This document shows positions 49,706-51,817 of a DNA stretch of 64,000 bases, piece after piece. This DNA is from Prasinococcaceae sp. CCMP 1430 (Eukaryota; Plantae; Prasinodermophyta). Each line of letters opens with the position of its first letter. Position 1 is the first letter of the stretch. Position numbers and translations under genes: made by a program. The notes beneath the pieces were generated by a model. It was not told the DNA's origin, ran no database searches, and was given only the letters and a program-made list of their open reading frames with translations. Location of the stretch: the NCBI GenBank assembly GCA_013416795.1, contig RQSC01001252.1, forward strand, positions 30,990 to 94,989. Reading direction: 5' to 3'.

Positions 49706-51817
49706 ATGTCGACTCTCGTGACCGAGTCCGAGCATGCCGCCTTCGGCGGCGTGGTGCGCAAGATGAGCCACCAGTCCTCGGCCACCGGCACGCGCATGAC
49801 ATTTACGGCGTTCATACCGCCGGCTGCGCGCTGCTCGGACGTGCCAGTGCTCTACTACCTGAGCGGCCTCACCTGCACGGACGACAACTTCACCACGAAG
49901 GCCTCAGTGGCGTTCAAGGCGGCTGCGCGCCGCGGCGTGATGGTCGTCGCACCAGACACCTCTCCGCGTGGCGAGGGCGTCGAGGAGGGCGATAGCTGGG
50001 ACATCGGCACCGGCGCGGGCTTCTACGTCGACGCCACGCAGGCGCCGTGGTCCACGAACTACAAGATGTACTCGTACGTGACGCAGGAGCTGCCCGCGCT
50101 CGTGGAGGCGGAGCTACCCGCCAACGAGCTGCGCTCAGTGACGGGCCACTCGATGGGTGGACACGGCGCGCTCGTCGCGGCGCTGCGCAACCCTGAGCGC
50201 TACGCGAGCGTGTCGGCGTTCGCGCCCGTGTGCAACCCGTGTGAGGTCCCTTGGGGGCAGAAGGCGTTCGGCGCTTACCTCGGTGGCACCGGCGGGGCCG
50301 AGTGGGAGCAGTACGACGCCACCAAGCTGATGGCCGCGGGCGCTGCCGCCGAGGGTGGCTTTGACGACATCCTCGTGGACGTTGGTGCCGCCGACCAGTT
50401 TCTGGTGGGCGACGTCAACCAGCTGCGCCCCGACGCGCTCGCGGCCGCGGCCAAGGCCGCCGGCCAGAAACTCACTCTGCGCAAACACAAGGATATGGAC
50501 CACTCTTACTTCTTCATCAGCTCATTCGTGGAGGAGCACGTCGACTGGCACGCCGACAGGCTCGTCAAGGCCGCCGCAGATGCCGTCGCCGCCAAGCGCG
50601 CGGTCGCGCCTGCGTCCGCCACGCCGACTGGCACGTCTGCCGCCGGGTCCATCGAGGGCATTCCTGAGGAGTTCCAAGCGACGCAGGGCAAGCCCATCGA
50701 GTGTAGGGCCGCGGTCGCCTGGGGCCCAAAGCAGCCGCTCAAGACTGAGATCGTGACAGTCGCGCCGCCCAAGGCCGGAGAGGTGCGCGTCAAGGTGATG
50801 GCCAACGCGCTATGCCACACCGACATCTACACGCTGGACGGCGAGGATCCCGAGGGGCTCTTCCCCTGCATCCTGGGGCACGAGGCGGGCGCAATTGTGG
50901 AGAGCGTGGGCGAGGGCGTGACCAGCATCGCGCCGGGCGACCACATCATCCCGTGCTACACCCCGCAGTGCGCCGAGCCCTCGTGCATCTTCTGCCAGAG
51001 CCCCAAGACCAACCTGTGCCCGACCATCCGCTCCTCGCAGGGCCAGGGTGTCATGCCTGACGGCACCAGCCGCTTCTCCATCGACGGCAAGCCCATTTAC
51101 CACTTCATGGGCTGCTCGACCTTTAGCGAGTACACTGTGCTCGCGGAGATCTCCTGCGCGAAAATCAATCCGGCGATGCCGTTTGAGAAGGCCTCGCTCT
51201 TCGGCTGCGGCGTGGCCACCGGCCTCGGCGCGGTGTGGAACACCACCAAGGTCGAGCTGGGCAACTCGGTGGCGGTCTTCGGGCTCGGCGCCGTCGGCCT
51301 GTCGGTGATCCAGGCCTGCAAGATGGCCGGCGCCAGCCGCATCATCGCCGTGGACATCAACCCCGACAAGTTCACCGTTGCGAGCCAGCTGGGCGCGACG
51401 GACTTCGTGAACCCCAAGGACCACGATAAACCCGTCCAGCAGGTGATTGTCGGCATGACCAAGTGGGGCGTGGACGTCAGCTTCGACTGCACGGGCTCCG
51501 TCGACGTGATGCGCTCCGCGCTTGAGTGCGCGCACCGCGGCTGGGGCCAGTCGTGCGTGATCGGCGTCGCCGGCGCCGGCAAGGAGATCGCCACGCGCCC
51601 TTTCCAGCTGGTCACCGGCCGCAAGTGGGTGGGCACCGCTTTCGGCGGCTGGAAGAGCCGCGCGGCGGTGCCGCAGCTCATCGACCGCTCGCTCAAGGGC
51701 GAGATCCCGGTCGACCACTACATCACCCACCTCTTCGACGGTGTTGACAAGACCAACGATGCCGTTGACGCGCTCCACTCGGGGGACTGCCTCCGCGCCG
51801 TCGTGCGCTACTTCTGA
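49706..51817 (+). CDS. Fusion of S-formylglutathione hydrolase (esterase D, N-terminal) and S-(hydroxymethyl)glutathione dehydrogenase/GSNOR (class III ADH, C-terminal)
   Basis: SFGH: [36 protein letters not shown] (Ser-Asp-His triad). ADH3: CRAAVAW, LCHTD, GHEAG, C..C..C...[20 protein letters not shown]. No stop or intron between the two domains. Confidence 0.97.

Follow-up and report, generated by a model that had tools for sequence, protein, structure and literature searches.

Formaldehyde and glutathione spontaneously form the adduct S-(hydroxymethyl)glutathione, which class III alcohol dehydrogenase (ADH3) oxidizes to S-formylglutathione with NAD+; the same enzyme also reduces S-nitrosoglutathione (GSNO) and is then called GSNOR. 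From this product, S-formylglutathione hydrolase (SFGH) releases formate and glutathione. A 64,000-nt stretch of DNA from the green alga Prasinococcaceae sp. CCMP 1430 (contig RQSC01001252.1, positions 30,990 to 94,989 of the forward strand; hereafter the window) carries an open reading frame (ORF) in which both enzymes appear to be joined in one polypeptide. Is such a fused gene real, is it peculiar to this alga, and how did it arise? The initial annotation, made from the DNA sequence, had presented it as an intronless SFGH-ADH3 fusion in an apparent green alga, inferred to be due either to an independent fusion or to a transfer. The data below argue, with a probability of roughly 0.85, for a real nuclear gene that Prasinoderma coloniale expresses and whose predicted bifunctional enzyme was inherited already fused.

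Domain architecture and functional residues

The positions 49706-51817 on the plus strand of the window form an uninterrupted ORF of 703 amino acids and a stop codon. In the corresponding protein, Pfam places the domains Esterase at residues 24-279, ADH_N at 357-487 and ADH_zinc_N at 529-660. Both halves were also compared with the equivalog models of NCBIfam, using their curated cut-offs. The SFGH half matches TIGR02821 (fghA) with 372.7 bits (cut-off 281.7) over residues 8-286, which correspond to positions 4-275 of the 275 in the profile, and the ADH3 half matches TIGR02818 (adh_III) with 579.9 bits (cut-off 543.95) over residues 333-702, the next-best family for this half reaching 241 bits. 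These family assignments bear out the earlier statement that the two halves belong to consecutive steps of glutathione-dependent formaldehyde oxidation.

Comparison with solved structures was performed for each half. The SFGH half matches the SFGH/esterase D structures 3fcx and 8ilj of the PDB with E-values of 1e-92 to 1e-87; these enzymes have the same fold and catalytic residues but are unfused, single-domain proteins. The ADH3 half matches the GSNOR/ADH3 structures of tomato, Chlamydomonas, Arabidopsis and human with E-values of 1e-162 to 1e-148. For instance, the values are 1e-162 for tomato and 1e-161 for Chlamydomonas GSNOR, and the plant and Chlamydomonas entries as a group (4dl9, 3uko, 7aas; 1e-157 to 1e-162) share the fold and the catalytic and zinc-binding residues with the ADH3 half, though they are single-domain enzymes. 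Against this half, the structures of class III enzymes reach about 500-545 bits and those of other ADH classes about 350-395 bits.

The functional residues were judged in an alignment of 64 fused homologues, by whether they fall in invariant or near-invariant columns. The SFGH triad S149 (within GHSMGG), D230 and H266, as well as the conserved active-site-proximal C57, occupy invariant columns and match the solved SFGH structures. In the ADH3 half, the catalytic zinc ligands C370, H392 and C501 are kept, and so are the structural zinc cysteines C422, C427, C430 and C438, R442, the GxGxxG motif at 526-531 (G526/G528/G531) and D550. Of these, R442 is presumably the counterpart of the arginine that binds the glutathione carboxylate in ADH3 (human Arg114/115). 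Together with the two profile cut-offs, which both halves pass, the conserved columns confirm the intact esterase D triad and the intact zinc-binding class III ADH described initially. Thus, judging by its sequence, the ORF encodes an N-terminal SFGH fused to a C-terminal ADH3/GSNOR, both canonical members of their enzyme families with functional residues intact.

The Ala-rich linker between the two domains covers residues 287-330, in agreement with its earlier placement at about 50565-50670. An AlphaFold2 model, obtained with the 64-sequence alignment as input, shows two well-folded domains with a mean predicted local distance difference test score (pLDDT) of 88.4 and a predicted template modelling score of 0.85. 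In this model, the C-terminal helix of SFGH extends to about residue 299 and the zone 300-320 is predicted to be disordered (pLDDT about 50, and below 50 at 304-312), being the only disordered part of the model; it is followed by a short PEEF helix at 321-324. The GC content at third codon positions (GC3) is 0.88 in SFGH, 0.82 in the linker and 0.92 in ADH3, so the codon bias is indeed as uniform as had been noted, and the neighbouring genes have values of 0.70-0.88.

Transcript, host and 5' exon

The transcript contig L002 of JGI (protein P0125) has 0 differences from the 703-codon coding sequence (CDS) of the window and contains both domains in one ORF. It aligns to the window positions 49204-49370 and then 49685-51954, reaching 137 nt beyond the stop codon. 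Since the 314-nt genomic stretch between these segments is missing from L002, this contig derives from spliced RNA. Furthermore, the independent Tara Oceans metagenome scaffold L001 encodes an identical 703-residue protein, with 4 CDS differences from the window that are all synonymous and at third positions. Eight environmental variants from the same 90% cluster all have 703 residues as well, with 0-6 substitutions. Neither a stop, nor a frameshift, nor an intron was found within the fused ORF in the window sequence, in L002 or in L001. The linker, for which a hidden stop or assembly join had been considered initially, shows none, and both L002 and L001 read through it in one fused frame.

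The protein is 100% identical to the Prasinoderma coloniale gene model PRCOL_00003320 (EukProt PRCOL_00003320-RA), so that the host is a green alga, as had been supposed. The GC content along the window is 0.62-0.74, consistent with the value of 69.8% published for the Prasinoderma genome (PMC7455551), and the neighbouring genes are ordinary eukaryotic nuclear genes with a GC3 similar to that of the fused gene. The possibility of a contaminant, or of a stramenopile or haptophyte contig, is excluded by the 100% identity to P. coloniale, the GC content of about 68-70% and the nuclear-type neighbours. A tblastn search for a paralogue inside the window found none.

The gene had been described as intronless. 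This holds for the fused ORF itself, but the gene as a whole contains a GT-AG intron at 49371-49684, upstream of the ATG that was first taken as the start. The gene model and its green relatives were known beforehand from public databases; the 5' exon and this 314-nt intron are an addition to the initial annotation. Translated from the ATG at 49251, exon 1 encodes 40 residues that are rich in Ala, Arg and Ser and include a single acidic residue. The public model of 714 residues (P0001) uses the ATG at 49359 instead and starts with MPIQ/SKRKAAA across the exon junction (slash). The green orthologues also have basic, hydroxylated N-terminal extensions of 35-60 residues, with a Met where the domain begins. 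Comparable extensions are found in Micromonas pusilla, in two Mamiellophyceae-like groups, in the Pycnococcus-related protein P0006 and in a Pycnococcus MMETSP transcript; in the Mamiellophyceae-clade loci L004-L006 (P0013), the extension lies within the same continuous ORF, whereas that of Prasinoderma is spliced from the 5' exon.

The N-terminal extension resembles an organelle presequence, and a second start could possibly give a cytosolic form. We regard this only as a lead, since long open frames are to be expected in GC-rich DNA. Nevertheless, as the 5' exon supplies a presequence-like extension, cytosolic localization of the enzyme should not be assumed. If two isoforms did exist, detoxification of formaldehyde and GSNO would take place in both an organelle and the cytosol. 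Within exon 1, the window has 12 extra in-frame bases at 49331-49342 (4 codons of a GCG-rich repeat) relative to L002, a difference that looks like a length polymorphism between strains or alleles.

Distribution of the fusion and comparison with known systems

A search with the full-length protein gave matches that have almost exclusively the Esterase + ADH architecture. Among the retrieved proteins, 201 contain both domains nearly full-length, and in all of them (201/201) SFGH precedes ADH3, the diatom-type order that had been assigned to the Prasinoderma gene; a protein with the reverse order was not found among these 201. The interdomain linker has 10-42 residues in 200 of the homologues and was computed as 0 in the remaining one. 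Green members of the set are Micromonas pusilla CCMP1545 (XP_003057538, annotated as "formaldehyde dehydrogenase/S-formylglutathione hydrolase"), Pycnococcus provasolii (GHP05852) and Pseudoscourfieldia marina. The ochrophyte members include many diatoms, Pedinella, Octactis, a Pelagophyceae sp. and Chrysophaeum, and further members come from Bigelowiella natans, Paulinella micropora, three diplonemids and the gregarine Porospora. In full-length BLASTP comparison, the Prasinoderma protein is 70-73% identical to the green-like proteins nearest to it (P0002-P0005, among them the Pycnococcus cluster), 67-68% to Mamiellophyceae and 59-62% to named diatoms.

Hence the fused gene appears to be an ordinary member of an already known fusion family, present in prasinophytes, ochrophytes, rhizarians, diplonemids and others. 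Although real, the fusion is common among marine protists, and the view of a curiosity confined to one green alga has to be corrected, the same architecture being annotated in Micromonas pusilla and in Pycnococcus/Pseudoscourfieldia and occurring also in many marine sequences of green-like type. The diatom SFGH-FALDH and the reverse-order ciliate fusions were published in 2005 (Stover et al., as summarised in PMC3143110), and so the reciprocal fusions that the initial annotation had cited are documented. Among the papers searched, none was found that discusses the green-algal fused copies, and the Prasinoderma genome paper (PMC7455551) does not mention the gene.

The diatom fusion (Stover et al. 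2005, Mol Biol Evol 22:1539, via PMC3143110) has the same enzymes in the same N-to-C order in a single ORF. On the other hand, the Prasinoderma linker of 44 residues is longer than those of diatoms (about 20-25) and unrelated to them in sequence, its host is a green alga of the Prasinodermophyta, and its copy falls into a separate green clade. The fusions of Micromonas pusilla and Pycnococcus/Pseudoscourfieldia are 67-70% identical to that of Prasinoderma and share its architecture and clade, although they belong to a different phylum; the junction motif IPEEF-x-ATQGK is common to Pycnococcus and Prasinoderma. In FSF1 of Tetrahymena (FALDH-SFGH), the same two enzymes form one polypeptide in reversed order, which its authors took as a sign of independent fusion (PMC3143110).

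In bacterial operons of the adhC/frmA-fghA type (Marinobacter plasmid pMAD49a; Edwardsiella frmR-frmA-fghA), the two enzymes are encoded by co-expressed neighbours but remain separate genes. The bacterial ADH3 proteins are 58-62% identical to the Prasinoderma ADH3 half and differ from it in the structural-zinc loop, which is C-x2-C in bacteria and C-x4-C in Prasinoderma. In the bacterial plasmid loci L007:1495-3516 and L008:1195-3952, adhC/frmA is followed by fghA; this order is opposite to SFGH-then-ADH3 and the same as in the ciliate FALDH-SFGH.

Origin of the fusion

To locate the Prasinoderma copy among its relatives, trees were inferred for each half and for the whole protein. In the tree of ADH3 halves, the green fused proteins (Prasinoderma and three relatives, Pycnococcus, and the Micromonas group) form one clade, with a support of 97 in the Shimodaira-Hasegawa-like approximate likelihood ratio test (SH-aLRT). 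The concatenated tree of 64 fused proteins recovers the greens with 95, the ochrophytes with 99 and the diplonemids with 99. Given this supported green clade, which is separate from the 99-supported ochrophyte clade, neither a fusion event of Prasinoderma alone nor a recent acquisition from a diatom is supported.

Several features are shared beyond the greens. An aromatic (D/E/S)-F motif located 2-4 residues before the ADH3 start is common in fused greens, diatoms and diplonemids, whereas most unfused ADH3 proteins start with Met at this place, the unfused Ditylum copy (MADFS) being an exception. The structural-zinc loop of the Prasinoderma ADH3 half has a 2-residue insertion in comparison with the tomato and Chlamydomonas enzymes, and the resulting pattern C-x4-C-x2-C-x7-C is present in 201/201 fused proteins. 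Among unfused ADH3 proteins, those of oomycetes, a dinoflagellate, Picozoa and diatoms have the C-x4-C loop too, while three bacteria, animals, choanoflagellates, tomato and Chlamydomonas have C-x2-C without the insertion. As a clean marker the insertion was rejected: the loop state changes twice on the ADH3 tree, as a choanoflagellate group with C-x2-C lies among sequences with C-x4-C, and the insertion is only partly useful. Collectively, the domain order, the (D/E/S)-F motif and the zinc-loop insertion seem to point toward one origin of the fusions, and we lean toward a single origin rather than an ancient convergence between greens and ochrophytes.

The ADH3 half reaches 637-671 bits against the unfused ADH3 of diatoms, oomycetes and Picozoa and 528-545 bits, about 100 fewer, against the GSNOR of Chlamydomonas and land plants, which hints that the core-chlorophyte and streptophyte enzyme could represent a different or a faster-evolving lineage. 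A more comprehensive proposal would be one ancient fusion, far wider in distribution than the published diatom case and spread over Prasinodermophyta, Mamiellophyceae, Pycnococcaceae, ochrophytes, Bigelowiella, Paulinella, diplonemids and a gregarine, with a "protist-type" C-x4-C ADH3 distinct from that of land plants and Chlamydomonas and possibly with two green isoforms, in organelle and cytosol. Taken in its entirety, this proposal is tentative, and we consider it rather doubtful that all its parts hold. That the fusion occurs in several prasinophyte classes and in the green phylum that diverged first, but not in Chlamydomonas or land plants, is relevant to the question of how green plants inherited or replaced their formaldehyde/GSNO module. 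If a single ancient fusion was the case, early green algae would have had a different formaldehyde/GSNO module from the one that core chlorophytes and streptophytes later fixed.

Certain points weigh against the main reading or limit it. The trees were built without unfused chlorophyte or streptophyte sequences, the plant and Chlamydomonas sequences of the PDB also being left out. The tree of SFGH halves (288 columns) is poorly resolved and, when inferred without outgroups, joins the SFGHs of alphaproteobacteria (Brevundimonas, Fodinicurvata) to the Prasinoderma clade with an SH-aLRT support of 93. Finally, the ADH3 tree requires at least 13 changes between the fused and the unfused state; either the architecture is labile or some "unfused" sequences are fragments. 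This count is partly due to the intermixing of fused and unfused diatom copies.

With respect to the SFGH half, addition of gammaproteobacterial outgroups lowers the support to 55 for the pairing of Prasinoderma with alphaproteobacteria and to 3 for the fork including P0337. Under a constraint of green monophyly, the tree gains 3 log-likelihood units over the free search (p = 0.54 in the approximately unbiased (AU) test). An alphaproteobacterial origin of the SFGH half was therefore not upheld, the constrained tree being better and the support collapsing with outgroups. Monophyly of all fused SFGH halves is not rejected by the AU test either (p = 0.42), the backbone of this tree being unresolved. 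The nearest unfused SFGHs of the Prasinoderma SFGH half are alphaproteobacterial (P0257, P0317 and about 100 similar proteins; 58-60% identity). They are as close to it as the fused halves of Mamiellophyceae and closer than those of diatoms (about 50-55%); rate differences, mitochondrial ancestry or transfer are candidate causes.

The alternative that survives best is convergence, namely at least two separate fusions of the two genes, in greens and in ochrophytes, that produced the same order. The ciliates, with their reverse order, are evidence that an independent fusion of this gene pair can occur (PMC3143110), the green-ochrophyte backbone lacks resolution, the linkers differ between groups in length and sequence, and the at least 13 changes of the fused state fit such a scenario as well. 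However, separate fusions would have to account for the identical order in all 201 homologues, for the (D/E/S)-F motif common to fused greens, diatoms and diplonemids and for the derived C-x4-C insertion common to all fused ADH3 halves, in addition to the unrejected monophyly of the fused SFGH halves. We consider convergence unlikely. A recent horizontal transfer of a fused gene from a diatom or another stramenopile into Prasinoderma could be imagined from the same architecture and the co-occurrence of both groups in marine plankton. Yet it is highly improbable, since the protein is more similar to its green relatives than to named diatoms, the green clade (95-97) is separate from the ochrophyte clade (99), and both the GC3 and the intron-containing structure are native to the host genome. 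An assembly or annotation artefact, in which two adjacent genes were merged by a read-through ORF, has a negligible probability: DNA of 70% GC does yield spurious ORFs of great length (here, the frame is open over 1218 codons from 48161), but L002 and the independent scaffold L001 both carry the identical fused ORF and thereby exclude an assembly join or read-through, this architecture recurs in about 200 homologues of diverse taxa, and the domain boundaries agree with the full-length family profiles.

Some placements within the trees deserve mention. Diatoms have unfused ADH3 copies (P0360, P0361, P0369, P0356) as well as fused ones, and the two kinds intermix in one clade of the ADH3 tree with 100% support. 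The unfused Ditylum ADH3, which starts with MADFS, retains the "DF" of the junction motif; this suggests that it could have arisen from a fused gene by fission or duplication. In the concatenated tree, the fused protein P0106 of Porospora cf. gigantea A nests inside the diplonemids (99), which could reflect assembly contamination or transfer.

Proposed function

By analogy with the characterized members of both families, the C-terminal ADH3 module would oxidize S-(hydroxymethyl)glutathione to S-formylglutathione with NAD+ and should also reduce GSNO, and the N-terminal serine hydrolase would then split S-formylglutathione into formate and glutathione. The later step of the pathway is thus assigned to the N-terminal domain. 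The linker of about 44 residues would tether the modules, ensuring their 1:1 co-expression and proximity, and, purely as an inference, S-formylglutathione may be channelled between them. As a putative natural and compact enzyme with two activities, the protein could serve as a system for asking whether tethering raises the flux from formaldehyde to formate.

Features of the locus and its neighbourhood

The coordinates of the gene and of its neighbours are collected in Table 1.

Table 1. The fused SFGH-ADH3 gene and neighbouring genes, in positions of the window; residues are numbered in the 703-residue protein.
Feature	Position	Strand	Basis or remark
UDP-glucose/GDP-mannose dehydrogenase	42597-43952	-	Pfam
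WD40 protein	46159-47670	+	Pfam
BCAS2/SPF27-type splicing factor	47799-48989	+	Pfam
5' exon	49251..49370	+	L002 mapping; contains ATG 49251 (first in the transcript) and ATG 49359 (public model)
GT-AG intron, 314 nt	49371..49684	+	missing from L002; borders atccag/gtgtgc and ccccag/tctaag
Beginning of exon 2: seven codons (SKRKAAA) preceding the SFGH-domain Met	49685..49705	+	L002, public model
SFGH (esterase D) domain	49706..50563	+	residues 1-286; TIGR02821, PDB SFGH matches, invariant triad columns
SFGH nucleophile S149	50150-50152	+	alignment
SFGH D230	50393-50395	+	alignment
SFGH H266	50501-50503	+	alignment
Ala-rich linker	50564..50695	+	residues 287-330
Class III ADH / S-(hydroxymethyl)glutathione dehydrogenase / GSNOR domain and stop	50696..51817	+	residues 331-703; TIGR02818, PDB GSNOR matches, kept zinc ligands
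ADH3 C370	50813-50815	+	alignment
ADH3 H392	50879-50881	+	alignment
ADH3 C501	51206-51208	+	alignment
3' untranslated region	51818..51954 at least	+	end of the L002 alignment
Long protein with TFIIS central domain (TFIIS-M)	57118-61065	+	Pfam

Downstream of the fused gene, an ORF of 690 residues at 52705-54774 has no Pfam match. In two marine Mamiellophyceae-like loci (L003:3335-4076 and L004:3945-4223), synteny is conserved in that the same acyltransferase gene (PF01553) follows the fused gene, a neighbour that Prasinoderma does not share.

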